This document shows, in pieces, positions 15,635 through 60,476 of a DNA stretch of 64,000 bases. The notes beneath the pieces were generated by a model. That model saw only the letters and a list, made by a program, of their open reading frames with translations, was not told the origin of the DNA and made no database searches. Made by a program: the position numbers and the translations under genes. Numbering within the stretch: position 1 is the first letter of the stretch; each line of letters opens with the position of its first letter. The stretch is from positions 434,001-498,000 of IMG/VR virus record IMGVR_UViG_3300027749_002876, one strand, 5' to 3'.

Positions 15635-16195
15635 TTACTTATTCTGTAGATAGGGTCTGTAAATCTTTTCTAATTCATTAATGGTATGTTGCGTATTGCC
15701 ATCTTCATGTTTAACTGCAATACCACCTGCGTTACTCCAAAGATTCAAATACTTACCATAGTCATCTACCAATACATTTGGCTCACCATTACTCAATGCG
15801 TATTTGTGTTTATGTTGTGTAAAGATAGCATCACGTGTAGCACTAGGATTGTGTTCATCTAACCAGTCTTTTTTAGCCTCTACACTGGCTTTGGCATATG
15901 GTCCACGTAATGGTGCACTTAATACTGTATACGGAATGTTATTTTGATTTAACCATTGTACTACTTTGTTTCCACCTTCTAGAGGTTTAAGTTCTCTAAA
16001 AAACTTATATACTTCTTCAGGGCTACTCGTAGCTAACTCATTGATTGATGTTTCAGTATCAGGAATCTCTTTGTAATTACCAACATTATGTTTTGCCGCC
16101 CAAGCTCCAAAAAAGTCAGCCTGTACTCCATCCATATCTAAGTATAGATGTGGCATTTTTTTGTTTGTATCTTCCATCAATTCATTAAGTTTCAT
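15635..16195 (-). CDS. HAD-family 5'(3')-deoxyribonucleotidase
   Basis: LYLDMDGVQADF, VLSAP, LVDDYGKYL--W---GG-A. Confidence 0.85.
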   Translation of the reverse strand: MKLNELMEDTNKKMPHLYLDMDGVQADFFGAWAAKHNVGNYKEIPDTETSINELATSSPEEVYKFFRELKPLEGGNKVVQWLNQNNIPYTVLSAPLRGPYAKASVEAKKDWLDEHNPSATRDAIFTQHKHKYALSNGEPNVLVDDYGKYLNLWSNAGGIAVKHEDGNTQHTINELEKIYRPYLQNK

Positions 16196-16202
16196 TTAGT
16201 TA

Positions 16203-16739
16203 TTATATCACAAATGGTAGAATAAGCCAAATGCCTTGGGTCAATAGTATTGTTCCAAAAATACTAACACCAATGCTTCCCCAAAACATACGCTTACTCA
16301 CAGCCAGTATACTAGCGGAAAGTAATACAATAGCTAACTGAAATGCCATACCAGCAAATGTTAACCATGGTGTATGTTTTTTGGCATCATCACGTTCACT
16401 TTCAATCTGTAATGCTTTAGCCATTAATTCTTTCTTACCTTCACCTTTAGCAGGGTCACTTTCATAGCGGTCAATTTTAGCTTGTAATTGTTCTCTACGC
16501 TTTGAGTCTTTAGCATCTTCTAATTGCCCTTCAGCAATACTTTGCTTGATACTTTTAGCTTGATAAAAGTTCCAAGTGTCATTTGCTTTGATAGTATTGG
16601 TTAGTATCTTGCTACTATATCCATTGGCTACATATGTTGTTACTGCTAATAATAATGCTATGACAGTAATGACCCATCCTGCTCTATCTTTGATTTGTGC
16701 CTCACGTTCACTGCGTGACAGTGGTTTTACTTCTACCAT
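16203..16739 (-). CDS. DUF4337-like membrane protein
   Basis: Three hydrophobic segments; ANDTWNFYQAKSIKQ; FQLAIVLLSASIL. Confidence 0.75.
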   Translation of the reverse strand: MVEVKPLSRSEREAQIKDRAGWVITVIALLLAVTTYVANGYSSKILTNTIKANDTWNFYQAKSIKQSIAEGQLEDAKDSKRREQLQAKIDRYESDPAKGEGKKELMAKALQIESERDDAKKHTPWLTFAGMAFQLAIVLLSASILAVSKRMFWGSIGVSIFGTILLTQGIWLILPFVI

Positions 16740-16765
16740 TTTATTTCCTTTTGAATATTTATAGT

Positions 16766-17518
16766 TTATGGGTGCAAGGTGCTATAGGTAACTGCACCAG
16801 CGTTTGTAACTGTGAGAGCATTATTACTCGTATCAGTTATATAAGTACCAGCAGATGCAACTGCTAACAATAATTGAGTTGAAGTGCCTGTGATTGTCGC
16901 ACTAGGTGAACCGTTGATATTGGCGCTTTGTGTAGCAGTTAGAGGCGTAGTTGACGGTGTAAAGTTTGAAGTATAAACTGCCAGCCCCTTAACAATTCTC
17001 ATGCTGGTCATGTAACCATTGAATGGGTTATTGTTTTGATTGGCACTCCATCCAATTTCTAAACTTCTATTGGTGTTGGAATTATACACACTGGTAGAAG
17101 TCAATACCGAGATGCCACCCACATACACTGTGACTGTGCCACTGGCCCTAACCAAAGCAACATGTTGCCATATTCCTGCTGTGACAACTCCATCGGAACT
17201 ACCAGGGTATGCACTGCCACTATAATAATTGAGTTTGCCATTATTGTTGAGATCAAGATTGTCACTATTGGATCCAAACCACCATAATCTTTGACTTACA
17301 GTGACTGACGTAGGATTTATCCAAGTTTCTACGGTATAATCACCGGTGCCAAAAGCAAATGCAGACCCTGCTGTAACAGAAGAAATTACTAATTCATTAT
17401 TGGCACCTGCGTTAGTTCCATTAAAAAATAAACTGCCGGTAAATGAAGAAATACTATCAGTAGTTAATGAAATGCCTGGTCCAATGTTAATTCCTCCACC
17501 AATTTGTATTCCTGCCAT
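16766..17518 (-). CDS. stand-alone LamG-domain protein with Gly-patterned N-terminal leader
   Basis: FGTGDYTVETW, WQHVALVRASG, GLAVYTSNFTPSTTPLT; N-term GIQIGGGINIGPGISL. Confidence 0.85.
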   Translation of the reverse strand: MAGIQIGGGINIGPGISLTTDSISSFTGSLFFNGTNAGANNELVISSVTAGSAFAFGTGDYTVETWINPTSVTVSQRLWWFGSNSDNLDLNNNGKLNYYSGSAYPGSSDGVVTAGIWQHVALVRASGTVTVYVGGISVLTSTSVYNSNTNRSLEIGWSANQNNNPFNGYMTSMRIVKGLAVYTSNFTPSTTPLTATQSANINGSPSATITGTSTQLLLAVASAGTYITDTSNNALTVTNAGAVTYSTLHP

Positions 17519-17604
17519 TTTATTTCCTTTGTTATGACTTATGCTATTTGATTAAACTTAATCAATTAAATATATATTTATACACAATCAAAAGGAGCAT
17601 ACCA

Positions 17605-17766
17605 ATGAGTTGGTTCAAGCACAAACCCAGAACAAAAACACCCCCAAAATTACATGTATATCATACAAGTCCTATAGCAGAAAAACTATTAAAAGAGACA
17701 AAACTTGAAGTCACTGGTGTAAAAGCCAAGTTAGCAGAAGTAGAGAAAAAGAAAAATGAACGGTAG
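17605..17766 (+). CDS. small basic hypothetical protein, 53 aa
   Basis: AAAGGAG RBS before ATG 17605 (track start 17548 is likely too long). Confidence 0.55.
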   Translation: MSWFKHKPRTKTPPKLHVYHTSPIAEKLLKETKLEVTGVKAKLAEVEKKKNER

Positions 17767-17929
17767 AGAACTACAACAAATGTATCAACAATGGTGTCAA
17801 GGAAATGATGATTACAATTTTCGTTGGTTAGATTTTGTTGAGATGGCCGCAAGACAGTTTCAGCAACCTGAAAGTGAAGTCATTAGAGAGTTACAGAAAC
17901 ATTATTGGTTTGTAAAAAACAATAAGTAG
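17756..17929 (+). CDS. hypothetical protein, 57 aa, not in the ORF track
   Basis: MNGRELQQMYQQWCQGNDDYNFRWLDFVEMAARQF...; fills the gap. Confidence 0.55.
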   Translation: MNGRELQQMYQQWCQGNDDYNFRWLDFVEMAARQFQQPESEVIRELQKHYWFVKNNK

Positions 17930-17938
17930 ATTTATTGA

Positions 17939-17944
17939 TAAATA
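17939..17944 (+). promoter_or_regulatory. late-promoter-like TAAATA; further copies at 18904, 20136 and 20887 precede other genes of this cluster
   Basis: TAAATA in four successive intergenic gaps; resembles the T4 late promoter TATAAATA. Confidence 0.6.
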
Positions 17945-17968
17945 CTACTATATTATAGGATTAACATT

Positions 17969-18874
17969 ATGGAATTCAGTGGAATGACAATAAGTGGTGG
18001 GGTTTCTATTGTGCCTCCCCCTCCCTCAAATAAGGCTATATTTGGTTATGGTTATCCCACCTATTCAATAACTAACTTAGTATCAATCACAGGTGTAGTT
18101 GCTACTAATACAACTGGTGTTGGTACCGGTAGACATGGTTTAGCAGCCGCAACTTATGGTACTGATAAAGCTATATTTGGTTATGGTAATGACACTAATA
18201 TCAGGCTATCAATGACCAATCTTGTATCAAATACAGGTGTAGTTGCTACAGATACAACAGGTGTTGGTACTGCTAGAAATAATTTAGCAGCCACAGGTTA
18301 TGGCACTGATAAAGCTATTTTTGGTTATGGATATATTGGCTCAGCTACATCAATAACTAATCTAGTAAGTAATGCAGGTGTAGTAGCAACTGATACTGCA
18401 GGTGTTGGCACTGCTAGGTACGCAAGAGCAGCCACAACTTATGGCAGTTCTGGACAAGCTATATTTGGATATGGTAATGGTCCTGTATCAGTAACCAATC
18501 TAGTATCAAGTACAGGTATAGTAGCTACTGATACAACCGGTGTTGGTACCGCTAGATCCGACCTTGCTGCCGCAGGGTATGGTACCGATAAAGCTATTTT
18601 TGGATATGGCGCCACTAGCAGTAATACTGCAATAACTAATCTAGTAAGTAACACCGGCGTAGTCGCAACTGACACAACAGGTGTAGGCACTGCTAGGAGT
18701 AGTCTAGCAGCCGCGGGGTATAGTAGTGATAAAGCTATTTTTGGATATGGTGATAATTCAGGTGCTTTATCAATGACCAATCTAGTAAGTAATACCGGTG
18801 TTGTTGCTACTGATACTGCAGGTGTCGGTACTGCTAGATTGGCGTTAGCAGCCGCAAGTTACGGCCTCAGTTAA
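17969..18874 (+). CDS. six-blade Kelch-like beta-propeller repeat protein (paralog A)
   Basis: Six copies of (K/Q)AIFGYG-loop-xxTNLVSxxGxVATxTxGVGTxR-xx-xAAxxYG; ends with the closing strand LAAASYGLS. Confidence 0.75.
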   Translation: MEFSGMTISGGVSIVPPPPSNKAIFGYGYPTYSITNLVSITGVVATNTTGVGTGRHGLAAATYGTDKAIFGYGNDTNIRLSMTNLVSNTGVVATDTTGVGTARNNLAATGYGTDKAIFGYGYIGSATSITNLVSNAGVVATDTAGVGTARYARAATTYGSSGQAIFGYGNGPVSVTNLVSSTGIVATDTTGVGTARSDLAAAGYGTDKAIFGYGATSSNTAITNLVSNTGVVATDTTGVGTARSSLAAAGYSSDKAIFGYGDNSGALSMTNLVSNTGVVATDTAGVGTARLALAAASYGLS

Positions 18875-18931
18875 AAATACAATTAACTTATTAGAGTTAG
18901 AGATAAATACATTATCATAAAGGAGAATATA

Positions 18932-19147
18932 ATGATAGACTTAGAAAACATGCCTGCTCCAACACAAGAGCAAATCGCAGAAGCAAGAGAAAACGCATTC
19001 AATGCAGAGCATCCAGCATCATGGACATGGAATGAAGAAGCAACTTCATATGTTGCTCCAGTAAGTGTTCCAAATGATGGCTATCCTTATTTATGGGATG
19101 AAGCTACAACTAATTGGACACCATTTCCAGATTATCCTAGAGAGTAA
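18932..19147 (+). CDS. small Trp/Pro-rich protein (possible fibre-assembly accessory)
   Basis: HPASWTWNEE----VAP--VP-DG-PYLWDEATTNW; strong AAGGAG RBS. Confidence 0.7.
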   Translation: MIDLENMPAPTQEQIAEARENAFNAEHPASWTWNEEATSYVAPVSVPNDGYPYLWDEATTNWTPFPDYPRE

Positions 19148-19153
19148 TCTTTA

Positions 19154-20101
19154 ATGCAATTCAGTGGAATGACAATATCGGGTGGGATAACGGTAGTTTA
19201 TATCCCTCCTCCCTCAAACAAGGCTATATTTGGATACGGCGTCAATAATGCCGATAGTATGGTTTCAATTACAAACCTAGTATCAAACACTGGTGTTGTT
19301 GCGACTGATACTGCAGGTGTCGGTACTGGTAGGCGAAACCTAGGCGGTGCAGGTTATGGTACTGATAAAGCTATCTTTGGATATGGGCAAACTAGTAGTT
19401 TATTATTCTCACTGACCAATCTTGTAAGTAATACAGGAGTAGTTGCCACAGATACAGCAGGTGTTGGTACTGCTAGAAGTAATCTTGCGGCTGCTGGGTA
19501 TGGTGGTGATAAAGCTATATTTGGATATGGGGCAAATCTCAATCAAGATGTGATGTATTCATTAACTAATTTGGTATCAAACACTGGTGTAGTTGCTACA
19601 GATACTACAGGCGTTGGTACTAGTAGATTCCAACTGGCAGCCGCAGGTTATGGTACTGATAAAGCTATCTTTGGATATGGGTACAATAGTAGTTTTACTC
19701 CACTTTCAATTACTAACCTAATAAGTAATACCGGTGTAGTTGGTAATGATGTTACTGGTGTTGGAACTGCTAGAACTGCACTAGCGGCTACTGGATATGG
19801 CACTGATAAAGCTATTTTTGGATACGGATACGCAGGAGGCGTTCAATCAATAACTAACCTAGTATCAAATACAGGCGTAGTGGCCAGTAATACAACAGGT
19901 GTAGGTACTGCTAGATATAACCTTGCGGCCGCAGGTTATGGTGTTGATACTGCTATTTTTGGATATGGAGTTGGTCCTGCAAGTCCACCGTATCTATCAA
20001 TGACCAACCTAGTATCAAACACAGGGATAGTCGCAACAGATACCACAGGTGTAGGTACTGCTAGATACGGATTGGCAGCCGCTAGTTACGGGTTATCATA
20101 A
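19154..20101 (+). CDS. six-blade Kelch-like beta-propeller repeat protein (paralog B)
   Basis: Six copies of the same repeat; same N-terminal leader FSGMTISGG. Confidence 0.75.
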   Translation: MQFSGMTISGGITVVYIPPPSNKAIFGYGVNNADSMVSITNLVSNTGVVATDTAGVGTGRRNLGGAGYGTDKAIFGYGQTSSLLFSLTNLVSNTGVVATDTAGVGTARSNLAAAGYGGDKAIFGYGANLNQDVMYSLTNLVSNTGVVATDTTGVGTSRFQLAAAGYGTDKAIFGYGYNSSFTPLSITNLISNTGVVGNDVTGVGTARTALAATGYGTDKAIFGYGYAGGVQSITNLVSNTGVVASNTTGVGTARYNLAAAGYGVDTAIFGYGVGPASPPYLSMTNLVSNTGIVATDTTGVGTARYGLAAASYGLS

Positions 20102-20170
20102 ACCCTAAAAATTTTTACTCACACAAATTAGCTAATAAATATCTCTATACACAACCTATAGAGAGAAAAA

Positions 20171-20839
20171 ATGGCATCAAATCTAAATTCAGAATTTAAC
20201 TACCGTTACCAGGTGATCGGTTCAACACCCTGGGAAAAAATCAAAACACTTCAAGGCTTCTATGTAGGTCGCAAACGAGCGGCCGTACTAGAAGAAGTGG
20301 CTGAATTAAAATATCAAGCTAAACTTGAAGAACTAAAACATCTAAAAACAGTTCCAGCACTACCGCATATTATGCTTAATCTACAAGCAGAAATCATTGA
20401 GTTGGAATCACACTTGGATGACCAAAAACATGCTTTCGAACTTAATCGCAAAGAGATTAAAATATTAGAAAAATACATGGCTGAACTTTATGCTGAAGTT
20501 GAACCAACAAGACTTAAGCATCCAGATGGTACACCGTATACCGATGATGAGATGTTTGAAGCTAATGCTAACTATGAATTCACAGTCACAGTTGGTCGTG
20601 AGATTCAATCGGAAATCATTGCAATGGGTAGACCTAGTCCAGCTAAACTACTCAATGCTATGAGTAATCCACAAACATTAAATTCATTAATGCAAATTGG
20701 TCTTGTACCACAAGGTACTATATTACTAGAGCAGAAAGATATTATGTTAGAATTAACTAATCAATCAACTACAACAGTAATGGATGCACCAAAAGAATTA
20801 GAAAGTAACACTTCTAAGAAGAAAACAAAGAAAAAGTAA
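20171..20839 (+). CDS. coiled-coil hypothetical protein
   Basis: 222 aa, helical heptad pattern, basic C-terminal tail. Confidence 0.75.
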   Translation: MASNLNSEFNYRYQVIGSTPWEKIKTLQGFYVGRKRAAVLEEVAELKYQAKLEELKHLKTVPALPHIMLNLQAEIIELESHLDDQKHAFELNRKEIKILEKYMAELYAEVEPTRLKHPDGTPYTDDEMFEANANYEFTVTVGREIQSEIIAMGRPSPAKLLNAMSNPQTLNSLMQIGLVPQGTILLEQKDIMLELTNQSTTTVMDAPKELESNTSKKKTKKK

Positions 20840-20861
20840 TAGTATAATACTTACAGAAAAG

Positions 20862-20884
20862 AGGCTCACTATGAGCCTTTTTTT
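20862..20884 (+). terminator. intrinsic terminator
   Basis: AGGCTCA-CTA-TGAGCCT followed by a T run. Confidence 0.8.
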
Positions 20885-20911
20885 GATAAATAAGTTGAAG
20901 GAAGATATATT

Positions 20912-29962: not shown

Positions 29963-30550
29963 TTATTCTCGTTTTTCGATAATTTTATCAATCAATCCAT
30001 AGTCTAATGCTTGTTTGGCTGACATAAAGTTATCACGTTCCATATCAAGTGTAAGTTGTTCAAACGTTTTACCTGCACTGTTATGTTTGACATATATTTC
30101 AGTAAGGTTCTTTTTCATTGCTAGAATTTCTTCTACTTGAATCAACATATCAGTTGCCTGACCACGTGCGCCACCACTAGGTTGATGAATCATATGTCGT
30201 GCATTTGGCAACATAAAACGTTTGTCTTTGGCACCTGCTGTTGCCAATAGACTGCCCATACTACAAGCCTGACCCATAACGATTGTTTGCACATCAGGTT
30301 TGATGAATTGCATACAATCATAGATGGCCATACCAGCAGTTACGCTACCACCTGGACTATTGATATACATTGAGATATCTTTCTCACCCTCTGATTCTAA
30401 AAATAATAGCTGGGCAACGATTAGATTTGCCATTTGGTCGTGTACTTCACCTTCAAGCAAAATAACACGGTCACGCAATAGACGGCTGTAGATATCGTAA
30501 CTACGCTCGCCTTTAGCGGTTTGTTCAATAACGATTGGGACTAGACTCAT
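29963..30550 (-). CDS. clpP: ATP-dependent Clp protease proteolytic subunit
   Basis: [24 protein letters not shown] (Ser), MIHQP (His), ERDNF (Asp). Confidence 0.97.
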
Positions 30551-30578
30551 AAACTTCCTTTATAAAAATATTTCTATT

Positions 30579-30607
30579 ATTATAACAAGAGTTTATGCTG
30601 TTGTCAA
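30579..30607 (-). promoter_or_regulatory. sigma70-type promoter of clpP
   Basis: TTGACA 30607-30602, 17 nt, TATAAT 30584-30579. Confidence 0.85.
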
Positions 30608-30620
30608 ATGTTTTTGGTAA

Positions 30621-32189
30621 TTAACGTGTCTTACGTTTTTTACGACCTGCACCACCCGTATCAGTATCAACGGGTTCAATTGTTCTAGGTTCTTTCCTAC
30701 GTTTTGGATCAACAATATCAGCCGCCGCAACAGTTACGTCATCGCCGTATTCATCAGATTGAACTACATCACCTGTAGCACCATCTGGACCTGGATCTTC
30801 ATAGTCTTGTGCATTTCTACCCAATTTGAAACTGAACCCTGCACTACTTGGTTGTTTTGCACTAGATTTGTTTTCTAATGTAACAACACCTTCTAGCTTA
30901 GATGGCCATTGGGTTGCAAAGGTCAATTCACCGTTAGCATGATAATCAGTGTATTGTTGAATGAAGTTCATTTCCAAAACTTGTAAGATAGTATCAGCAA
31001 ACTCAGGTATTGCATTATCTTCATTCACCGCACGTGATATTGTTTTCTTAATTAGATATACTAATTTACCACCTTCTGTAGCAACCTCACTATTAACAGT
31101 TGCAAGTAAAGGTTGATATGATGCTGGTAATCTAGAGCCATTGTTTATACTATCAATACTTTGTTGTAATACTTTAGGTGATGTGGTTTCAAATGGTAAA
31201 AACTTATGCCATACTTTAGGAATGCTATTCGGATTTACTTTGAATAAAAAATCCATAATCTTAAATGCTTGAACGATAGTACTTGGCCCGGTTTCGTCTT
31301 TTCCTGCCTGACACAACTCAATAAGTTTAACTGCGTTTTTTAGTTTACCATTACGCTTGATATCATCACTAACCTTTAAGCCTGATACAGCAGGAGCCGC
31401 TCCTCCTCCGGTGCCTTTACTTGAAATGTTTAAGCTATGACTTGTTCCTGGATTAGTAATAGTAGCATAACTATCAGCAATATTATTGTTAGCCGCACTC
31501 GGAAAGTTTAATACTAGTGAACCCATATCACCGCCTAGCCATTCTAGGAATTGACGTTTTCTAGGGAAGCGAGTACGGTCATATAATAATGCTAGTACAC
31601 CTAAGTATTCACCGGCATAATCAACAATGGCCTTACGTTCTTTTTCTTTTTCTTTTGTTACGTAGTTTTCAGGTAGTTGAACATATTCACCTGACACAAT
31701 ATAAGTAGCAAGTTGTTGTACTACTTGTCCGTAATCTGTACTAGCTAATACTTGATTGTTCTCAATAGTATCGTATAAGTCTGATGCTGGGATATTTCTA
31801 TCTGTGATTTTAATCAATGATGGTTTTAATAAAACAGATTCTTTTGTACTACCACCAAATTCTTCATTCTTAGCTAACTGTGCCATTGGGATTTCTCTAC
31901 CATCTTTGGTTATAATAGTAATCTTTTCACCGATAAAATCACCTGAATCTTTAAGTTGAGTTAACCGATTTACTTCGCTAGCTTTGATATAAATATCTTC
32001 ACCGGTATAGTTATCAACAAATGGTTTATTAGTTTTTATTTTATTGATTAACAAATTCCATCTTTCAGGTTTTTTATTAATCTGTGTTGGAGTTAAACCG
32101 TTAGCAAACAAAGTAGAAGGAGCGTTAGGATCCTTCTTTTTAGCTTCATCCATAGCTAAGTTTTCAAGTAATGTTAATAAATCACGCAT
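30621..32189 (-). CDS. large hypothetical protein, possibly virion-internal with a nuclease-like segment
   Basis: 522 aa; TAAATA 6 nt before ATG; N-term MRDLLTLLE; ADSY...ISSKG segment. Confidence 0.7.
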   Translation of the reverse strand: MRDLLTLLENLAMDEAKKKDPNAPSTLFANGLTPTQINKKPERWNLLINKIKTNKPFVDNYTGEDIYIKASEVNRLTQLKDSGDFIGEKITIITKDGREIPMAQLAKNEEFGGSTKESVLLKPSLIKITDRNIPASDLYDTIENNQVLASTDYGQVVQQLATYIVSGEYVQLPENYVTKEKEKERKAIVDYAGEYLGVLALLYDRTRFPRKRQFLEWLGGDMGSLVLNFPSAANNNIADSYATITNPGTSHSLNISSKGTGGGAAPAVSGLKVSDDIKRNGKLKNAVKLIELCQAGKDETGPSTIVQAFKIMDFLFKVNPNSIPKVWHKFLPFETTSPKVLQQSIDSINNGSRLPASYQPLLATVNSEVATEGGKLVYLIKKTISRAVNEDNAIPEFADTILQVLEMNFIQQYTDYHANGELTFATQWPSKLEGVVTLENKSSAKQPSSAGFSFKLGRNAQDYEDPGPDGATGDVVQSDEYGDDVTVAAADIVDPKRRKEPRTIEPVDTDTGGAGRKKRKTR

Positions 32190-32250
32190 AATGAGTATTT
32201 ATGCTTTTAAACAGATTTTGATATTTAAACCATTGCCTAATAGGCAAGTG

Positions 32251-33390
32251 TTAACTCAACATGAGGTTAGCCTCACGGCTAACATAATTGTCATAGTCTT
32301 TTGCAAGTAATAACACCGTATCATGTGGTGTGTTAATATTCCTTGCTACACGGGCTCTAACATACTTGCTTACATTTTTTGCAAGTAACATCAATGTTTC
32401 AGGTGGAGTGCTTCGATTTGATGCTACATTCATTTGAACATCTACGACTGGGTCTTTTGCAAGTAACATCAATGTTTTAGGTGGGGTGCTTGGATTTGAT
32501 GCTACTAACTCTCTAACATCTATATCCTTATCTTTTGCTAGCAACATCAATTGTTCGGATGGAACTTCTTCCCGATCGGCAATTAATTTTTTTGTTTTTA
32601 ATGGCATTTTAGATACATCAATTTTAGAGAAGTCGTAATGTGCTCTAATAGCTGATTGTGTATCCAAATAACTGCTACTACGTAGACGATAGTTGCCTTC
32701 AGGACTATTAGAATTTGCAAACTTACAAAATTTATCAACTACTTCTCTAAAGCCAGCTACATTAGTTCCGTACGCATTATCTGGAAAAAGTACCATATGA
32801 TTTTTGTAATAATATGGCTTTATCAATATTCGAGCCAATGGGTTATCAATATTTTTATCATTTTCTCTAATCAAGTATGCAATGATTGCTCCGTTTTTAA
32901 TGTCTGCTGGTATATATTTATTATTAACAGTCGGACCGTCATCTAAATCCATACATGAAACCCAACCACGGTCTGTACTCATACCTGCAATATCAATCGG
33001 ATCTCTTGAAAACACCACCTCAAGTGGAGAAGCCTGCCGTGTCGCGGCCCTAATTGGGTCATTTGCAAATTTATTTAATAACTTTTTATCCTTGATTAAT
33101 TTTCCAATTTTTATTTTTTTACTTGGATCACTAGATTTTTTTGCCAATCCATGCTTATAGTCATCAATTTCATACCCAAGATTAGAAATTGCATTTTGTA
33201 GTTCTTTTTGAGTGGATGAAATTTCTTTACCTGAATCGGAAGATTGTACTTCTAGAGGTGCATAAATCCGAGATTTTCCATTAAACACATTATCGTGTAT
33301 ATTAGCATCGTACTCTGACCCTAAATCTTTGTATAATTTTGCAATTTGTTCAGGTGTTAGTGCTTCAATTAAAAATTCTGTGGCTCTCAT
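32251..33390 (-). CDS. protein with C-terminal leucine-rich-variant (LRV/HEAT-like) repeats
   Basis: About four 24-aa repeats L-LLAKD----VR--VA-N--TP; N-term MRATEFLIE; TAAGTA 5 nt before ATG. Confidence 0.8.
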   Translation of the reverse strand: MRATEFLIEALTPEQIAKLYKDLGSEYDANIHDNVFNGKSRIYAPLEVQSSDSGKEISSTQKELQNAISNLGYEIDDYKHGLAKKSSDPSKKIKIGKLIKDKKLLNKFANDPIRAATRQASPLEVVFSRDPIDIAGMSTDRGWVSCMDLDDGPTVNNKYIPADIKNGAIIAYLIRENDKNIDNPLARILIKPYYYKNHMVLFPDNAYGTNVAGFREVVDKFCKFANSNSPEGNYRLRSSSYLDTQSAIRAHYDFSKIDVSKMPLKTKKLIADREEVPSEQLMLLAKDKDIDVRELVASNPSTPPKTLMLLAKDPVVDVQMNVASNRSTPPETLMLLAKNVSKYVRARVARNINTPHDTVLLLAKDYDNYVSREANLMLS

Positions 33391-33398
33391 ATTAGTAC

Positions 33399-33890
33399 TT
33401 ATGCTTTAAACAAATCCTGGTGCTTAAACCACTTGCGCTTACTGTGAGCACCTTTTAATGAAATTCTATGTTTCTTTAATTTATCTCGGAATACAAAGAA
33501 GCTAGGACCATGACTCATTAGAGGTTGTTTACCTCGTTGAAGTCTTTCCATTCCTTGAATATCCCATTGATATTGATGGCACATTTCGTGTGCTAATACT
33601 GTGATAAGCCACTGCTTACAGTACCACTTGTCCATCACTCTTATTTTACAGTAGCTCTTAGTCCTACTAGGCATTTCTAATGAACCGTAACACATGCCCC
33701 AATATTTTCTACAACGTGGCATAACTTCAATCTCAGGCATTATTAGCTTGTTATTAAATATTGTTTTATTCAGCATCCTATAAAGTGATATAACTTCATC
33801 ACGGTTGGTTCTATAACAAAGACGTTTTTGATATGTGATTGGTGGCAATTCCTCACGCATAAGGTCGATAATAGAAGTTTTTTTGAACAT
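33399..33890 (-). CDS. SprT-like zinc metalloprotease
   Basis: VLAHEMCHQY (HExxH) and SHG-F motif. Confidence 0.85.
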   Translation of the reverse strand: MFKKTSIIDLMREELPPITYQKRLCYRTNRDEVISLYRMLNKTIFNNKLIMPEIEVMPRCRKYWGMCYGSLEMPSRTKSYCKIRVMDKWYCKQWLITVLAHEMCHQYQWDIQGMERLQRGKQPLMSHGPSFFVFRDKLKKHRISLKGAHSKRKWFKHQDLFKA

Positions 33891-35900: not shown

Positions 35901-37796
35901 TTAATTAGATTCTTTTACTTCCGCATCAACTACATTGTCATTAGCATTCTTTGCTTCTGTAGCTTCTTTGGCTTTTTGTTCCTCATCATATTTGATTTTT
36001 GTGATGGGACTAATTGCTTCGTATAAGTCTTTGATTTTGTTTTCAATTTCTTCTACGTCTGTTCCAGCTAATGCAACTTCCAATGCATCAATGCTATTAG
36101 ATGCTTTTTCTTTTTCTTCTGCTGTAACACTATCTCCGTGCTTCTCGTAGTCTTTACGGAAACTGTTCAATGTTGATTCGCCGTTATTTTTTGCTTGAAT
36201 AAATTTAACTTGTTTGGCATCAGATTCAGCATTTGCTTCAGCATCATTAACCATTTGTTGAATTTCTCTTTCAGTTAGTCCTGAATCAGATTTGATAGTA
36301 ATCTTATTCTCTTTGCCTGTACCTTTATCTTTGGCACTTACATTAAGAATACCATTTGCATCAATATCTAACGTGACTTCAATTTGAGGAACACCACGCA
36401 TTGATGGAGGAATGCCCTCTAAATTAAATTCACCTAATATCTTATTGTATGTAAACAAATCACGTTCACCTTGTGCAACCTTAATAGTTACTGCAGGTTG
36501 ATTGTCTTCCGCTGTACTAAACACTTGACTATGCTTAGTTGGGATAGTTGTATTCTTCTTAATCAATTTAGTGAATACACCGCCACTTGTTTCAATACCC
36601 AAACTCAGTGGTGTCACATCCAATAACAATACGTCAGTGCGTTCACCGGCTAATACACTACCTTGAAGTGCCGCACCTGCCGCCACTGCTTCATCAGGAT
36701 TAACATCTTTGCGTGGTGCCTGACCAAACAACTTCTCAACTGTTTCTTGTACTTTGGGCATACGTGTCATACCACCAACAAGAATAACCTCATCAATGTC
36801 AGCAATTTTAACACCGGCATCTTGTATAGCTTGTTGACATGGTTTGATACTACGTTGAATCAATTCATCAACTAACAATTCTAATTTAGCACGACTTAAT
36901 TTAACATTTAAGTGTTTAGGTCCACTAACATCGGCTGTGATATATGGCAAGTTAACATCTGTTTGAGCACTACTACTTAACTCAATCTTTGCTTTCTCAG
37001 CCGCATCTTTCATCCGTTGCAATGCCAATACATCTTTGGTTAAGTCAATACCGTTGTCTTTCTTAAACTCATCAACTAAGAAGTCCATGATACGTTGGTC
37101 AAAGTCTTCGCCACCTAAGAACGTATCACCATTTGTTGATAATACTTCAATTTGTGTTTCACCATCAACATCTGCTAATTCAATAATACTTACATCAAAT
37201 GTACCACCACCTAAGTCATAAACAGCAATCTTACGGTCCGTTTTATCTTTTTTATCTACACCATATGCTAGTGCAGCCGCAGTAGGTTCGTTGATAATAC
37301 GCAATACTTCTAGTCCTGCAATACGTCCTGCGTCTTTAGTTGCTTGACGTTGGCTATCATTGAAGTAAGCTGGAACTGTAATAACTGCTTGAGTAACTGT
37401 TGTACCCAAATAGTCTTCAGCAGTCTTTTTCATCTTACGTAATACTTCAGCACTGATTTGCGGTGGTGCTAATTTTTGCCCATTAGACTCAACCCATGCA
37501 TCGCCATTGTCTGCCTTAATGATTTTGTATGGCATCAAGTCAATATCTTTTTGAACCGCTTGTTCTGTGAACTTACGACCAATCAATCGCTTGGCAGCAT
37601 AGATTGTATTCTTTGGGTTTGTAACTGATTGACGTTTGGCACTTGCACCTACTAATATCTCATCATTGGCATAGGCAACGATTGAGGGTGTAGTTCTTGC
37701 ACCTTCACTGTTTTCAATTATTTTGGGGATTCCGTTTTCAATAACGGCTACGCAGGAATTTGTGGTTCCGAGGTCTATTCCAATTACTTTGCTCAT
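35901..37796 (-). CDS. dnaK: chaperone DnaK (Hsp70)
   Basis: [41 protein letters not shown]; AAGGAG RBS supports the start at 37796 (631 aa). Confidence 0.98.
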
Positions 37797-37862
37797 TTTT
37801 TCTCCTTTATAAAGCAAGATTCTAATTTCAGACCCGATAATCGGCATCTGAGTACATATTTA
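37797..37862 (-). promoter_or_regulatory. TAAATA promoter plus ROSE-like RNA thermometer leader of dnaK
   Basis: TAAATA 37862-37857; mRNA UCAGAU-G-CCGA-UUA-UCGG-GUCUGA hairpin, then CUU(G)CUU-UAUA-AAGGAG. Confidence 0.7.
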
Positions 37863-37894: not shown

Positions 37895-38110
37895 TTAAAA
37901 GTCTTTCTTAGGAAGACTTTGGTCTCTTAAAAATTTCTGCCACCTACGTTTAGCTTGACTTTTTGCTAGTTTACGTTTGATAGTAGGTTTTACGAATTCT
38001 TGACGGTCACGTACCTCTTGTAAGGTGCCGTAGTCTGCGATAACTTTTTTAAATTTCCGCAATGCTTTGTCTACGTTTCCATCCTGAACTAAAACTTTCC
38101 TACCTCTCAT
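37895..38110 (-). CDS. rpsU: 30S ribosomal protein bS21
   Basis: V-V---NVDKALRKFKK-----G-L-E-R-RQ-F-KPT-KRK; LPKKDF tail; ATGA-coupled to clpX. Confidence 0.9.
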   Translation of the reverse strand: MRGRKVLVQDGNVDKALRKFKKVIADYGTLQEVRDRQEFVKPTIKRKLAKSQAKRRWQKFLRDQSLPKKDF

Positions 38111-39309
38111 ACTATAACTGTTGGCTCCAAAATTTGTTTTCTATCTATATTTATGTTTAGTACATTATTATCACGGTACTTTTTAGTGTAGAACATGTGA
38201 GGCATCAATACACGCTCAATTTCAGTATGCAATCCACGTGCCCCTGTCTTAAGTGACAATGTATTCTCTGCTAATTGGTCTAGTGCATCTACCGTAAAGC
38301 TTAAATCAATGTTGTCCAAGCTTAACAAGTACTTGTATTGGTCAATATAGTTATTTTTGATTCCGGTCAATACTGTGATTAACTCATCTTTTGTCAAATC
38401 TTCCACATTGACTGTTGTAGTAAAACGACCAATGAACTCGGGAATCATACCAAATTTAACTAAGTCATCTGGACTAACATTACTTAAATTACCATCAGTG
38501 TTGGCGTTTTTAATTTGAGCGCCAAATCCAATACTTGTACCGTTTTCACGATTGCTAACAATACCCTTTAATCCAACAAATGCACCGCCAGCAATGAATA
38601 AGATATTCTTAGTATTGATTTCAATCATATCTCCACCGGGATGTTTACGTCCACCACCAGCTGGAATACGACAAACAGTACCTTCAACCAGTTTAAGTAA
38701 TGCTTGTTGAACACCTTCACCTGACACATCACGTGTGATATTAGCACTTTCACCTTTACGGGCAATCTTGTCAATCTCGTCAATGAATACAATGCCACGC
38801 TCGGCTAGTTTAACGTCACCACCTGCGGCATTGAGTAGCATACTAATCATTGATTCAACATCATCACCTACATAACCTGCTTCTGTAATACTTGTTGCAT
38901 CTGCTACGATGAAGGGCACTTTAAGATATTTTGCTACTGTTTTAGCAAGTAAGGTTTTACCTGAACCAGTTGGTCCTACTAGTAATACATTACCTTTAGA
39001 AATCTCTAAGTCTTTAGGTGGTTTGTTGATACGTTTATAGTGATTAGCAATAGCCACACTTAATACTTTTTTAGCATTGTGTTGACCAACTACATGAGTA
39101 TCAAGGAAATCTTTAATAGACTCTGGATCATATGATACTGCATCTTCTATTACAAATTCGTTCTTGGATTCATCGTCTACCATTAATGTATTGCATAATT
39201 CTACGCAATCACTACAGATAGCTACTTCTTCACTTACAATCAATTTTTTTACATTGTCTTTGTGGTTATCACAAAAGGAACAACGGTTGAGTTTATTTTC
39301 TGTTGACAT
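38107..39309 (-). CDS. clpX: ATP-dependent Clp protease ATPase subunit ClpX
   Basis: CSFC...CSDC zinc domain, [31 protein letters not shown] loop. Confidence 0.97.
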
Positions 39310-44237: not shown

Positions 44238-45572
44238 TCACTTATCGTCACGGAAACGAACAAATCTGGGGAAACGCAAACTATATGTACCATCTTGGTT
44301 CTGTGTAATTACATCACATAAGACTTCACAAGTGCGACCAATGACCAAATTACGGTTAGTGTAATAATCATCTCTATCAACATCACTAAAGCCACTACCC
44401 ACATTGACTGTAATTTCTTTCCCGTCGTCAACTCCATGACAAACCAGTGCTCCAAGTCTTCCCAAGTTTCTACCAGTACCTTCTTCAACACCTACGACCT
44501 CCAAATCTACAGTTAATGTTGGCTTCCATTTCATCCAATCAGTGCTACGTTTACAGATATATGGAGCTTCTAATTCTTTAATCATAATGCCTTCAAACCC
44601 TGCATTGACATTGTCCTTAGCATAACGCATCAATTGATCCTTACCTGCGGCTGTATCTAAGTCAACCATGATGTGTGGTAATAGTTCAACATTGGGCATA
44701 GTGTCAACCACGTGCCGAATGTGTTCAAGGATATCGATACGTTTACGCAGTTGACTATTCCAATGTCCTTCACGGAAATCACTCAATGGAATAATATCAA
44801 AGATATTAAACACACTGTCATCAGCCTGCACGTTGTCTTTTCTACGTGCTTGTCGCATCAGTTCTTGGAATGTATTACCGATCACTTCACCGTCTAATAC
44901 GAACCCGTTAATCAATGCGTTCTGATGTCCTCTAGCAATTTTAATCCAGTTCTCACGCACCTGTTCTTCAATGTGACCAAAGTTGTCAAACTGTTTGCCG
45001 TTACGACTGAAACAGATAGTAGTCACATCACCAAAGTCACTTGGGATAACCATTAGTAACACACGAACACCATCAAGCTTTGGCTCAAGACGTTTAACAC
45101 CTTTCATCTCAGGACGACCCTCGCTATTAGTTGCTAGTTGACAACCAAAGATTGGGATCTCGTAATCAGTTTTTTTACAGATTTTATTAACTGTCTTATC
45201 GCTGATACCTGCACGTAAGTCTCTACGCAATACAGGTGCTAAGAATGTATTCCATTCACTACTATCAAAACGCTCTGCCATTTCCTGAATAGCATCACGT
45301 GCGGCATGACCTGTCAATCTACGTTGGCTAAGTTGTAACATCAATTCATTAAACTCTTCCCAGGGATTTTCTGCATCACTAATACCTACTGTGTCTGGTA
45401 CTTGGCGAACACCAAACGTAACGTAAGGATTGTAACACGCTTTTACAAAAGACAAGAAATTGATAGCGTTTGTACTACCTAGGACACTTGCCTCTAATGC
45501 TTGTTTGATAACGTCTTCCTTGTGTAGGCGACTATCTGATTCGTTTAGTTTATTAATCCAACTTGCACTCAT
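44238..45572 (-). CDS. lig: ATP-dependent DNA ligase
   Basis: EPKLDGVR (KxDG), LDGEV, FEGIMIK, WMKWK, OB-fold VGSGF, LRFPRF---R-DK. Confidence 0.95.
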   Translation of the reverse strand: MSASWINKLNESDSRLHKEDVIKQALEASVLGSTNAINFLSFVKACYNPYVTFGVRQVPDTVGISDAENPWEEFNELMLQLSQRRLTGHAARDAIQEMAERFDSSEWNTFLAPVLRRDLRAGISDKTVNKICKKTDYEIPIFGCQLATNSEGRPEMKGVKRLEPKLDGVRVLLMVIPSDFGDVTTICFSRNGKQFDNFGHIEEQVRENWIKIARGHQNALINGFVLDGEVIGNTFQELMRQARRKDNVQADDSVFNIFDIIPLSDFREGHWNSQLRKRIDILEHIRHVVDTMPNVELLPHIMVDLDTAAGKDQLMRYAKDNVNAGFEGIMIKELEAPYICKRSTDWMKWKPTLTVDLEVVGVEEGTGRNLGRLGALVCHGVDDGKEITVNVGSGFSDVDRDDYYTNRNLVIGRTCEVLCDVITQNQDGTYSLRFPRFVRFRDDK

Positions 45573-56939: not shown

Positions 56940-56958
56940 GAAAAATTCCTATGAGTCA

Positions 56959-57002
56959 AGTTGATAAGTCTCTATTATAGACCCAAACGGATTAATTGTC
57001 AA
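56959..57002 (-). promoter_or_regulatory. early promoter with variant leader
   Basis: TTGACA 57002-56997, 17 nt, TATAAT 56979-56974, leader AGAGACTTATCAACT. Confidence 0.8.
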
Positions 57003-58060
57003 GTTTTATCTAATTTGTATCCGGTTACAATAAGCCCATATTGTGAAAATTCACGGTAAAATGCATCGATATCATTACCATAATATAGGAAACATTGTCC
57101 TCGGGTATTTACACTACTTTTTTTACCATCTACTGCAATAAAACTAATTCTATGGTCAGTGAAGCAAAGAGCATTAGCTGTATCTGCTAGTTTTTTAAAC
57201 CAACCTGTGTCGGTTGAATTGTTACACAAAATGATAGCTTGTTCAAAATTAGATTTTTCTAGCTCGGTCAAAAACTTATTTACTGCTACTTTCATAAGAG
57301 GACCATATGGTGGATTTAACCATACTGATTTGGCATTCCAATCCTTTGAACACCCATCATCTTTTTCTGTGAATATTCTTGAGGCTTTTACAGTTTCGTT
57401 TGCTTTGACACTACTAAACGGGTCCAAATCAATAGTTCCACCAAATACGTTACGTGCAGAATTTGTGTATTTTTCAGGTGTGTACCAGCTATCGCTGTCT
57501 CTATCTTTAGTATATGCTACGGGTGAAGAACCTACATATGCAATATTAACTTTTTTAGTGACCTTTTTCATTTGATTATTTATCACTTGGTCAATTTTAG
57601 TACAAGTACCTTCATAATCAAGCGCAACAAATTTGTTGTTTTTTATGCGAGAGGCTTCTAAATTTATTGCTTCTATAATAAGTTTCCCTCGCTTTTCTTT
57701 CCAATGCTTACCCATAGTTGCACACAAGTATTCTTGAAATATGCTTTTATTAGCATGAAATAATACACCAAGCATTTTTTCATCAACACTACCCGGTACC
57801 TCTTGTGTTTTCACTTCAATCCCTAATAAGGGAACAGTACCTTTAAACAAACCAAAATCGATTCTTCCAGGAGCACCAAACCAATTAGTATATGGATATT
57901 GTTTAACTGCAACGATTTTATCTTTTGGAATTATAGAATTTTGAAATGCACTATATGATTCATAAATTGTAATTCCGCTTTTTATTAAATGAGCGGCAAC
58001 TAATGAATCCCCTGCTTTACCTGAATCCTGTGCCAATGTGCCCTGACTGTGTTTAATCAT
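56999..58060 (-). CDS. PD-(D/E)xK nuclease-like domain fused to phage Dam-type N6-adenine methyltransferase
   Basis: N-half RIDF-(12)-IEVKTQ---GSVDEK; C-half DSWYTP, IDLDPFSS, VWLNPPYG, TDTGWF. Confidence 0.8.
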   Translation of the reverse strand: MIKHSQGTLAQDSGKAGDSLVAAHLIKSGITIYESYSAFQNSIIPKDKIVAVKQYPYTNWFGAPGRIDFGLFKGTVPLLGIEVKTQEVPGSVDEKMLGVLFHANKSIFQEYLCATMGKHWKEKRGKLIIEAINLEASRIKNNKFVALDYEGTCTKIDQVINNQMKKVTKKVNIAYVGSSPVAYTKDRDSDSWYTPEKYTNSARNVFGGTIDLDPFSSVKANETVKASRIFTEKDDGCSKDWNAKSVWLNPPYGPLMKVAVNKFLTELEKSNFEQAIILCNNSTDTGWFKKLADTANALCFTDHRISFIAVDGKKSSVNTRGQCFLYYGNDIDAFYREFSQYGLIVTGYKLDKT

Positions 58061-58090
58061 TACTTGTGTCCTATAATATTTTTGAATAAA

Positions 58091-58510
58091 TTAACTAACC
58101 TCAGTACGGCCTTCGCCTAAGTTTTTAGTGCGTACCATTCGTAAGTCACGGTTCGTTGGATCGGCCTGTTGTTGTTCATAGACCTCGAGTGCAATATTTC
58201 TACAAATTGTTTGAAACCAACGATCTACTAACACGTTATCTGTATCAGTATCTTTTTGTTTATAACCTGCACGAATTAAATTTACAATAAACTTCTCATT
58301 CCAGTCAAGTTCAAATGCACCATTGTTAACATCATTGGGGTCAAGCTCCAAACTTAGAATGTTAATATACGGCTCACCTGCTGCCGTTGCTTTTTCTTTA
58401 GCAGTAAGTTCAGGTACTACTGGTGCAATTTTCTTTTCCTTAACTTTTTTAGGTTCGGGTTCAGATTTAACTTCTGGCTTTTTAAATAAATTCTTTATTT
58501 TTTCAAACAT
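58091..58510 (-). CDS. conserved hypothetical protein
   Basis: KEKATAAGEPY, GAFELDWNE-F, VDRWFQ-ICRN. Confidence 0.75.
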   Translation of the reverse strand: MFEKIKNLFKKPEVKSEPEPKKVKEKKIAPVVPELTAKEKATAAGEPYINILSLELDPNDVNNGAFELDWNEKFIVNLIRAGYKQKDTDTDNVLVDRWFQTICRNIALEVYEQQQADPTNRDLRMVRTKNLGEGRTEVS

Positions 58511-59520
58511 TTGTATCTCTCTAGTAATTTAAAGCTGGCTAAGTTTTTAGCTTTGCTTTCGCACATCATATCAAAATTATCAATGAATGTCAATGCCCAA
58601 TCGTTCACCGCTTCGTTCCAATAGTAATCACTATGTGCCCTAAGCTTCTGTTTACTGTATCCCGCTTCAATCAACGCACCATGAGAGGGTAATTGTGATC
58701 CGGAATGTCCGACAAGTACATCTTCACGGCTGACGGAGTAATGTAGAGTAGGCCTAACACCACGCCAGCTATCAATAACCATTTTAACACGGTCGTCAGT
58801 AGGTTGAATATATTCACCTTCCCTAATCCAATTATGGTGAATGTCCATGACCGTAGGTACGAGGTCAGATAATGATAAGCAGTCTGTAAGTCCATGTGTG
58901 TATTCCTCATTTTCTAGTGTTAGTGTGTTTCTTGCTTCGGGGCTGAGTCTTCCGTAGACTTCTCTGATTCCTTGGGGACCTCTTCGTCCTGAGATGTGGA
59001 CGTTGGTTTTAAAGTCCTGAAACTGTTTGCCGAAACCCATCCATCGAACCATGTCTGCATGATACTCAAACTCCTCTATACTCTTATTTACTACCTCATC
59101 ACGGTCACTTGCTAAAACTACAAACTGATCCGGATGAAATGATAACCGAACATCATTAGCTCTAGCTGTTTCACCGATAGGTGCAAACCATCGTTGTAAA
59201 CTATTTTGTACATCGGTTGATTGCCAAAATTCTTTGTAGCCATCCATAGTATAAAAACTAAGCATATCACTAGTAAGACGAACCATACGCAATTCGGGTT
59301 CTAATGTGGCAACACGCTTAACAAGTGCGTGAGTATTCATAATATTGCGTTTAGCAACATCCATAATCTTTTCTTCTACTACATTACGGTTATTACGCTT
59401 TGCCCACGCTTGTGTAGTACCACCTGTGTTAAGACCCTCGGCTGAAACAAGCTCACCTTTGTGATTGATTTCCGCCCATTTACAAGCAAAGCCGATGCGT
59501 TTGATAGATTGATTTGTCAA
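58495..59520 (-). CDS. uvsE: UV-damage endonuclease
   Basis: RIGFACK, RLSFHPDQFVVL-S, NVHI, TLENEE, MDIHH, HYS, AHSDY; TTG start. Confidence 0.92.
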   Translation of the reverse strand: MTNQSIKRIGFACKWAEINHKGELVSAEGLNTGGTTQAWAKRNNRNVVEEKIMDVAKRNIMNTHALVKRVATLEPELRMVRLTSDMLSFYTMDGYKEFWQSTDVQNSLQRWFAPIGETARANDVRLSFHPDQFVVLASDRDEVVNKSIEEFEYHADMVRWMGFGKQFQDFKTNVHISGRRGPQGIREVYGRLSPEARNTLTLENEEYTHGLTDCLSLSDLVPTVMDIHHNWIREGEYIQPTDDRVKMVIDSWRGVRPTLHYSVSREDVLVGHSGSQLPSHGALIEAGYSKQKLRAHSDYYWNEAVNDWALTFIDNFDMMCESKAKNLASFKLLERYKCLKK

Positions 59521-59600
59521 AGTAATAGTCCAAAGTGATAAATAATAAGATACAGTGTAACATATTTACGCAATAAAGTCAACTATTTACGGATACCACT

Positions 59601-60476
59601 ATGAGAATTAACGAATTTATAACAGAGTCTAGTAAGATTTGCCCACAATGTGGAATGAGAGGTTGCACGTGCAAACCTGGAAAATGTAATTGCAAACCAA
59701 AGCCTGGTTATCCAAAACAGGTTGATGAAGCCGCTAATCCAGCACAACAAGCCGCTATAGCTATTGCTATGAAAAAAGCTGGTAAAAAGCCAAAAAATAT
59801 GCATGAAGAAGATGAGGGTATGTTTGGTAGATCCAAAAACGATAAACGATATTTAGATAAATTTGATCCAACTGAAGTTATGAATATCAGTGATGATCCT
59901 AGTAAGGCACATAAAACAACGGGCAAGGGTTCATTAAGAACATCTAAGAAAGATTTAGAATTTGCATTTGGACCACCCGGAGAAGATGATACATGGGTTT
60001 TAGAATTTAAGAATGGTTTAATTGCCACTATATACCCACAATCTAACAGTGGTGGCATGGATTGGATCATAGGTGGTAATCATACAAACACTGAAGATTT
60101 TGTACATATGGCTTATTCAGCCGCACTTGATGAAAAACTTGAAGAGGATTGGAACAAGGTCAACCAGAAAGACAAAACATCTGGTATGAGCCGTAAGGCA
60201 GTAAAAGCATATCGTAGAGAAAATCCAGGTAGCAAATTACAAACAGCAGTTACTACTAAACCTAGTAAATTAAAGCCTGGATCAAAAGCTGCCAAACGCC
60301 GTAAGAGTTTTTGTGCTAGAATGAGTGGTAACAAAGGTCCTATGAAAAAGCCTAATGGTAAACCTACTCCCAAAGCATTAGCACTACGTAGATGGAATTG
60401 TGAGAGTGTAGAGCAAATGGAAGAATTGGTAATGTTAGCAGAACAATTTATCCGCAATCACAAGACTAAACTTTAA
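59601..60476 (+). CDS. modular basic protein, probable virion-internal (Cys-rich N-term; RKSFCARM...LRRWNC module)
   Basis: N-term MRINEFITE; CPQCGMRGCTCKPGKCNC; C-terminal module common in T4-like phages. Confidence 0.7.
   Translation: MRINEFITESSKICPQCGMRGCTCKPGKCNCKPKPGYPKQVDEAANPAQQAAIAIAMKKAGKKPKNMHEEDEGMFGRSKNDKRYLDKFDPTEVMNISDDPSKAHKTTGKGSLRTSKKDLEFAFGPPGEDDTWVLEFKNGLIATIYPQSNSGGMDWIIGGNHTNTEDFVHMAYSAALDEKLEEDWNKVNQKDKTSGMSRKAVKAYRRENPGSKLQTAVTTKPSKLKPGSKAAKRRKSFCARMSGNKGPMKKPNGKPTPKALALRRWNCESVEQMEELVMLAEQFIRNHKTKL

Follow-up and report, generated by a model that had tools for sequence, protein, structure and literature searches.

Why do four otherwise unrelated proteins of an uncultured giant phage begin with nearly the same eight or nine residues? 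The question is raised by a stretch of 64,000 nucleotides (the window), which comprises bases 434001-498000 of one IMG/VR virus record (IMGVR_UViG_3300027749_002876; 524,565 bp, 36.7% G+C). The proteins are an LRV-repeat protein (P0001), a basic modular protein (P0002), a nucleotidase (P0003) and a 522-residue protein suggested as a possible nuclease (P0004). The original prediction took their common start for a leader comparable to the capsid-targeting sequence (CTS) of bacteriophage T4. All four N-termini are present as claimed, each on the first start codon of its open reading frame (ORF), and the proteins are indeed unrelated: without their first 12 residues, the bodies show no mutual BLAST similarity at E<1e-3. 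Capsid targeting of the T4 CTS type, followed by removal of the leader by the prohead protease, is the best reading of the evidence and a moderately probable one; for the four window proteins it is argued from analogy with T4.

A leader shared by unrelated genes

The leader is a peptide of 8-10 residues with the consensus M-[R/K]-x-x-[E/Q/D]-hydrophobic-hydrophobic-x-E; the next residue is usually A, S, G, T, D or N. A genome-wide motif scan, which had been suggested as a check, was run on 621 genes predicted by a simple caller based on codon bias. The pattern M[RK]xx[EDQ][FLIMV]x(1-2)E stands at 15 of the 621 predicted N-termini, compared with 0.32 expected from composition. In 1000 shuffles of residues 2-13 the leader pattern appeared 0.45 times on average and at most 4 times, so that the enrichment is 30- to 50-fold, and three of 2787 internal methionine positions match it. 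Counting hydrophobic-hydrophobic-x-E by the position of its glutamate gives one sharp peak, at residue 9, with 17 proteins over a background of about 3. Two residue-9 matches starting MSLVP[IM]VIE-Q were dropped as ordinary ClpP N-termini.

When all candidate starts are listed, the genome contains about 20 tagged genes. Stripped of their first 12 residues, these form six pairs of paralogues plus eight singletons, about 14 families unrelated by BLAST. The four cases first described are real, and what proved too narrow was their extent, which reaches about 20 genes here plus a clade of uncultured jumbo phages. The tagged genes include one for an amidoligase-domain protein (MRATDFIILE-D); another leader in the genome reads MKISALLRE-A, and a 74-residue head-core protein encoded between portal and protease carries MKLFEMFDE-A. 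The leader lies outside the Pfam cores, with the NT5C profile starting at residue 17 and the superoxide dismutase (SOD) profile at residue 18. The mature isoelectric point (pI) exceeds 8.6 in 10 of 20 tagged proteins, set against a proteome median of 5.9.

Leader codons differ synonymously, and upstream DNA is common to paralogues only, not to unrelated tagged genes. Selection therefore acts on the peptide, and the leader is under protein-level selection. A mobile cassette of promoter plus leader was ruled out, the upstream DNA being conserved between paralogues alone.

Head genes and the T4 precedent

The genome encodes, at genome 353668-354312, a Peptidase_S77 protein (PF03420, the T4 gp21-type prohead protease; Pfam E 2e-27) and a gp23-type major capsid protein (PF07068; Pfam E 4e-99). 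The head module runs in the order portal, 74-residue protein, 276-residue protein, protease, 367-residue scaffold-like protein and capsid protein, and the site LAE-S of the capsid protein is placed as LTE-A is in the T4 capsid protein. Directly downstream of the capsid gene lie four tandem paralogues of about 310 residues that start M[ED][IF]TGG[ML]TF.GG (genome 357869-361735).

The comparison with the T4 CTS holds: an S77 protease occurs together with a gp23-type capsid protein, the leader aligns with MKTYQEFIAE-A, and the tag is found on the head-core protein near the protease. In the T4 record, IPII and IPIII start MKTYQEFIAE-A, gp22 MLKEQLIAE-A, gp24 MAKINELLRE-S, Alt MELITELFDE-D and gp21 MNEPQLLIE-T. 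T4 also served as a positive control; the same caller and positional statistic gave a peak at residues 9-10 and ten matches, six of them known gp21 substrates (gp21, gp22, IPII, IPIII, gp24 and Alt). The CTS of IPI, IPII and IPIII goes back to Mullaney and Black 1996, work covered by the reviews PMC9026906 and PMC3012670. For capsid targeting, the 10 residues at the start of IPIII suffice, and processing is governed by residues 8 and 10 (PMC9026906, PMC3012670). An aspartate at position 10 stops processing and not targeting (PMC9026906), which provides a precedent for the targeting of an uncleaved P0004.

Like the T4-type CTS, a propeptide of about 10-19 residues, the leader is short, opens the sequence of unrelated proteins and ends in a gp21-type hydrophobic-x-E, as the pairing of MR-ATEFLIE with MKTYQEFIAE illustrates. 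The endings L-I-E (P0001), I-T-E (P0002), L-M-E (P0003) and L-L-E (P0004) all fit the (L/I)-x-E preference of gp21. Unlike the T4 CTS, it is one or two residues shorter, has mostly arginine at residue 2, and marks some 20 genes (about 3% of the proteome), whereas T4 has it on 3-4; here it is known from genes alone. Its cargo extends beyond small basic proteins to enzymes and large multi-domain proteins, and the genome is 524 kb and uncultured, compared with 169 kb for T4. The T4 head propeptides cut by gp21 are of the same length class and have the same hydrophobic-x-E end; MKLNELME-D and MKISALLRE-A resemble that of gp24, and MKLFEMFDE-A resembles that of Alt. The T4 examples, in contrast, are mostly structural or scaffold proteins, and the mature parts show no detected homology. 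T4 Alt is a precedent for a packaged enzyme.

The phiKZ-like giant phages provide a further comparison. SPN3US and phiKZ package many proteins with their DNA, and their prohead protease cuts after the glutamate of small-x-E (PMC5694885). Their propeptides are mostly 80-130 residues long with the motif A/S-x-E and belong to another lineage and head architecture, in contrast to the short leader described here (PMC5694885). A literature search for the strings MRATEF and MKTYQEFIAE found neither in any paper. A CTS-type system is known from T4; among open-access papers and bioRxiv preprints, this scale, consensus and clade appear to be undescribed.

Uncultured and cultured relatives

The leader recurs in other uncultured phages. 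IMG/VR was scanned with ATG AGA GCN ACN GAA TTT, which covers MRATEF only, and ORFs of at least 40 residues were kept, giving at least 115 ORFs. The tripeptide [LIVMF]xE at residues 7-9, which was no part of the query, is present in 80 of the 115 MRATEF matches listed. In nearly all of these listed matches the ATG is the first in its ORF, and their bodies form at least 38 BLAST clusters, about 22-27 of them with the full leader. Peptidase_S77 was detected in all five large related contigs tested (318-360 kb). In a complete relative of 344 kb the peak at residue 9 appears again, with seven M[RK]xxEF[IV]xE proteins. The most conserved leader positions are the glutamate and the hydrophobic residue two before it.

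By capsid protein (62-67% identity), the nearest cultured phages are Vibrio phage 2.275.O, Sinorhizobium phage Phosso, Pseudomonas phage PA5oct (64% identical) and Rak2/PBECO4-like coliphages, all of them jumbo phages with the same portal-to-capsid module order. A near-identity DNA search with 12 kb of the window gave no useful match among deposited phages. Small head-core orthologues with the leader occur in four of four cultured relatives: MKINDIITE-G in PA5oct, MKLVELFE-A in the Vibrio phage, MLKDIFE-S in slurp01 and MRYNEFSKE-S in Phosso. The resemblance to PA5oct/Rak2-like jumbo phages (PMC7318152) covers capsid identity, a syntenic module and the leader on the small core protein; unlike the genome studied here, the isolates carry a leader-like N-terminus on few of their proteins. 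Neither propeptides nor the cleavage of leaders come up in the searched passages of the PA5oct paper (PMC7318152).

The PA5oct record marks 93 of 461 proteins as virion proteins by electrospray ionization tandem mass spectrometry (ESI-MS/MS). Five PA5oct proteins bear a tag or are homologues of tagged proteins here, and four of them are annotated in virions, compared with the 20% baseline. These four are the leader-bearing small head-core protein gp150; gp238, which starts MKIKDILVE-S; gp261, an SOD homologue extended at its N-terminus by a stretch that ends ...SIAE-A; and gp349, which is homologous to the tagged gene at genome 33875. The fifth, gp271, has a leader-like N-terminus and is not among the virion proteins. 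Our own binomial estimate for this overlap is about 0.007, for a small set chosen after the fact, and the overlap is suggestive support for packaging of tagged proteins.

One tagged gene (genome 519133-520008) encodes a 'YHYT' motif domain that belongs to a very large phage family with 1326 representatives. ADP-ribosyltransferase-like look-alikes of this protein (score 0.82-0.89) are a lead only. The tripeptide [LI]-x-E stands just before the 'YHYT' domain in 88 of 92 copies where the domain is N-terminal and in 30 of 34 where it is internal, in proteins as long as 1700 residues. Judged from these sequences, [LI]-x-E before internal domains may mark protease junctions inside multi-domain precursors.

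A wider proposal can be put forward tentatively, at slightly less than even confidence: a mostly uncultured, T4-related clade with genomes of about 300-525 kb may load dozens of diverse proteins by means of MRxxEF-hydrophobic-x-E. The candidate cargo comprises SOD, nucleotidase, amidoligase-like and ADP-ribosyltransferase-like enzymes, repeat proteins, and precursors cut at internal [LI]xE.

The four window proteins

The positions of the four genes, their leaders and the adjoining features are given in Table 1.

Table 1. Coordinates (window numbering) and strand of the tagged genes, their leaders and adjoining features.
Feature	Position	Strand	Remarks
P0001	32251..33390	-	379 residues; leader, conserved N-terminal domain (~residues 10-255), C-terminal LRV/HEAT-like repeats
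P0001 leader MRATEFLIE	33364..33390	-	predicted cut after Glu9, before Ala10
ATAAGTA	33396..33402	-	T4-late-type promoter core variant; 6 nt before P0001 ATG, no Shine-Dalgarno sequence
P0002	59601..60476	+	291 residues; leader, Cys-rich insert, Ala/Lys-rich segment, middle module, C-terminal DUF6321; pI ~9.6
P0002 leader MRINEFITE	59601..59627	+	predicted cut after Glu9, before Ser10
GATAAATA	59537..59544	+	promoter-like motif; 56 nt upstream of P0002 ATG
P0003	15635..16195	-	186 residues; NT5C-type 5'(3')-deoxyribonucleotidase (HAD fold) with N-terminal add-on (Pfam, PHROG)
P0003 leader MKLNELME	16172..16195	-	predicted cut after Glu8, before Asp9
DUF4337 membrane-protein gene	16203..16739	-	Pfam E 3.9e-32; directly upstream of P0003, 7-nt gap to P0003 ATG
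TATAAATA	16754..16761	-	promoter-like motif; upstream of the DUF4337-nucleotidase pair
P0004	30621..32189	-	522 residues; phage-only family (594 homologues), disordered basic C-terminal tail
P0004 N-terminus MRDLLTLLE (then N)	32163..32189	-	second leader type, also on the Fe/Mn SOD of the genome
ATAAATA	32196..32202	-	promoter-like core; 6-7 nt before P0004 ATG
ClpP protease gene	29963..30550	-	adjoins P0004; Pfam CLP_protease E 1.7e-79

The LRV assignment of P0001 was right (Pfam LRV, PF01816, E 3.5e-13, 49.4 bits at a cut-off of 21.6), and the top Foldseek match of residues ~260-378 is 1lrv. The N-terminal domain matches uncharacterised proteins only among AFDB clusters. M[RK]xx[ED]-hydrophobic-x-E is retained in all 29 homologues of this domain, the most distant of them about 30% identical; conservation of E9 in the family is at least 90%, and the homologue in Atu_ph07 starts MQYTDLIE-A. 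In the AlphaFold2 (AF2) model of P0001, with a predicted local distance difference test (pLDDT) value of 85, residues 1-8 are below 50 and outside the fold. P0001 is likely to be packaged in the capsid. Homologues of its N-terminal domain occur in the uncultured phages LR756502 (642 kb) and LR756504 (636 kb), in Atu_ph07, Lu11 and RsoM2USA, and in Erwinia/Dickeya jumbo phages. The domain is widespread in jumbo phages, and LR756502 and LR756504 are among the largest published uncultured phages.

P0002 had been described as a basic modular protein, and Pfam DUF6321 (PF19846, E 1.4e-15, 58.1 bits at a cut-off of 28.5) agrees with this. For this gene the crude caller chose an ATG further inside; a paralogue at genome 36970, which starts MRIKEFINE-A and has the same 40-nt upstream region, favours the start at 59601 through that conserved region and the leader. 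In relatives of P0002 the same leader is followed either at once by DUF6321 or first by an insert, which varies, and in one IMG/VR relative MRATEFITE is joined straight to DUF6321. Such natural module swaps behind the same leader fit the targeting of a foreign protein by the leader alone, without testing it. P0002, too, is probably capsid cargo. The DUF6321 domain occurs in about 390 deposited phages, mainly T4-like cyanophages, where it lies in the structural module beside terminase, and pelagiphages. One copy from T4-like cyanophages is annotated 'structural protein'; the cyanophage and pelagiphage copies are basic but have no leader.

The nucleotidase label of P0003 is correct (NT5C, PF06941, E 3.1e-10, 40.6 bits at a cut-off of 24.8; PHROG 2643, E 1e-23). 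Its DMDGV motif occupies residues 20-24. M[KRQ]xx[EDK][LI]xE is kept by 64 of the 84 homologues called from the outer ATG, and in the homologues a linker of 2-9 residues separates the leader from the conserved MPHLYLDMDGV core. The DUF4337 gene and P0003 are probably in one transcript. Whether P0003 is packaged is close to evenly balanced, tilting slightly towards no.

P0004 matches nothing in Pfam or PHROG, and a Foldseek search against the PDB came back empty. The conserved amphipathic stretch at the N-terminus of its family is of the MR[DEN] type, and the paralogue at genome 66506 carries the canonical leader MRAHQFLTE-A. AF2 gives a mean pLDDT of 75, with residues 1-27 below 50. An IMG/VR scan for MRDL[LI]xLLE returned the P0004 and SOD families only, so that this leader type is so far common to just two families. 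An Fe/Mn SOD at genome 34804-35358 carries MRDLIQLLE-D.

Of the suggestion that P0004 might be a nuclease, what remains is a set of sub-threshold fold and feature leads, set against the missing Pfam and PDB matches. A wide VIA fold search gave best Z values of 3.3-3.7 (I-Ssp6803I, PfoI, EcoRV), below the tool's stated noise level, and Atlas features scored 0.91 to MspI/HaeIII/HinP1I clusters. D239 and S256-S257-K258 are invariant in the family and, going by our reading of the alignment, might fit a PD-(D/E)xK-type catalytic motif. These leads are weak but mutually consistent, and P0004 is possibly a PD-(D/E)xK restriction-endonuclease-like nuclease. Packaging of P0004, possibly by targeting without cleavage, is somewhat less likely than not.

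A ClpP gene paired with a P0004-family gene occurs twice in the genome, at window 29963-32189 and at genome 66506-67930 with ClpP at 68000-68587. Two zinc-finger-type ClpX-like N-termini are encoded at genome 62530 and 473309 (window 39309); the latter belongs to an AAA-type ATPase at window 38107-39309 and was read as ClpX-like from its zinc-finger-type N-terminus. In PA5oct, ClpP is among the proteins whose annotation records their finding in virions by mass spectrometry (MS).

Promoters and start context

The promoter-like motifs lie as had been described, two of them ~6-7 nt from the ATG (P0001 and P0004) and two further upstream (P0002 and the DUF4337 gene). The proposed link between tag and late promoters is weak: 7-8 of 20 tagged genes have an ATAA[AG]TA-type motif, against 104-125 of 601 other genes (motif within 60-100 nt upstream; p ~0.04-0.14, uncorrected). 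Since tagged genes are only weakly enriched in the motif, the promoter argument adds little.

In this genome the late-type core is [GC]ATAAATA or TAAATAC, found 15-25 nt before head and tail genes together with a Shine-Dalgarno sequence. At about 65 genes of every kind, P0001 and P0004 among them, [GC]ATAA[AG]TA lies 5-9 nt before the ATG and there is no Shine-Dalgarno sequence. The closeness of the motif to the ATG and the missing Shine-Dalgarno sequence suggest that these genes have leaderless or near-leaderless mRNAs from T4-late-type promoters. TAAATA beside the ATG was ruled out as a mark of tagged genes, because these roughly 65 genes share the layout.

Proposed capsid targeting and its alternatives

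By analogy with T4, the leader would bring a tagged protein into the assembling prohead core, where the gp21-type (Peptidase_S77) prohead protease would cut after the glutamate of hydrophobic-x-E. The mature protein would stay in the head with the DNA and would probably enter the host along with it. For the four window proteins, core binding, cleavage after the glutamate, packaging and injection are steps that we infer from this analogy.

Several observations weigh against capsid targeting and cleavage. The case for packaging or cleavage in this uncultured phage is an indirect one, argued from T4 and PA5oct. For P0001-P0004, homologues are missing from PA5oct and from every phage that has a virion proteome; for P0004 they are missing from all deposited phages. 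Phosso has the strict form MRxxEFxxE once, while PA5oct, Vibrio 2.275.O and slurp01 lack it; its near absence from cultured relatives implies looser versions and few tagged genes there. P0003 has further ATGs in frame, at codons 7 and 14, and its translation may begin inside the leader-bearing ORF; the inner start is the one called in 30 of 120 database homologues. At residue 9 of the P0004 family, 45 of 111 homologues have Q, 25 have E and 24 have D, and a cut at this position is doubtful because the glutamate is not kept across the family. A nucleotidase and an SOD are unusual capsid cargo. The [LI]-x-E before 'YHYT' could, from sequence, be a structural part of the domain instead of a cut site. 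The association with late-type promoters is weak, the motif being common before genes of all kinds. A predicted complex of the S77 protease with P0001 residues 1-40 scored 0.01, which is evidence neither for nor against.

The leader could instead be a recognition tag for another phage system, such as a degron or adaptor-binding tag for phage Clp machinery with timed removal. N-terminal tags are an established way of addressing Clp proteases, both ClpP genes lie beside a P0004-family gene, there are two ClpX-like N-termini, and PA5oct codes for ClpS and ClpP. This explanation is nevertheless unlikely: the best match of the tag is the T4 CTS and gp21 site, the tag sits on a conserved head-core protein within the head module, its invariant feature hydrophobic-x-E is the gp21-type cleavage motif, and PA5oct tag-bearers and homologues are found in virions. 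The virion data also bear on a reading in which the leader is a true prohead-protease propeptide and the proteins are assembly or core components, degraded or expelled at maturation like T4 gp22, gp67 and gp68 and not injected. The prototype is a head-core protein and T4 scaffold proteins have similar N-termini, as this reading would have it; the persistence of PA5oct homologues in mature virions and a cargo that includes folded enzymes and repeat proteins without scaffold-like composition make it improbable.

It is very unlikely that the shared N-terminus is a translation-start feature (an mRNA or codon signal of genes that are leaderless or lack a Shine-Dalgarno sequence) or an ordinary amphipathic first helix with no role in targeting. 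Many genes do have a promoter-like motif beside the ATG and no Shine-Dalgarno sequence, and the P0004-type N-terminus, with its variable residue 9, resembles a generic amphipathic helix. Yet the residues are kept despite synonymous codon change, most of the ~65 genes with this layout have no tag, some tagged genes are normally spaced and some lie inside operons, and conservation is highest at the glutamate and at the hydrophobic position two residues ahead of it. Chance resemblance, or hidden paralogy of the four proteins, is already refuted. Such explanations draw on the shortness of the motifs, the AT-rich genome and the paralogue pairs among tagged genes; they fail on the excess of 30- to 50-fold over shuffles, on the number of unrelated families (~14 here, ~22-27 among the IMG/VR matches listed) and on a second genome that repeats the pattern.

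What a capsid-loading signal would mean

If the leader is a capsid-loading signal, the proteins that widespread uncultured giant phages carry into their hosts could be listed from sequence, and the injected effector set of any such phage would be readable straight from its genome. In T4 this packaged class includes anti-restriction proteins and host-takeover enzymes. The CTS, a T-even curiosity with 3-4 small proteins, would become a general means of cargo loading on about 3% of a 524-kb genome. Unexpected enzymes would be among the packaged proteins, and a natural short tag would be at hand for loading foreign proteins into large capsids. Counter-defence candidates would emerge among unannotated genes, for example the P0004 family and the P0001 N-terminal domain.

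Other genes of the window

A PHROG scan of ten large window proteins gave few informative matches. A 648-residue protein of PHROG 22485 is encoded at 35901-37847, and the window also codes for an ATP-dependent DNA ligase at 44238-45572 (PHROG 114, E 2e-88).

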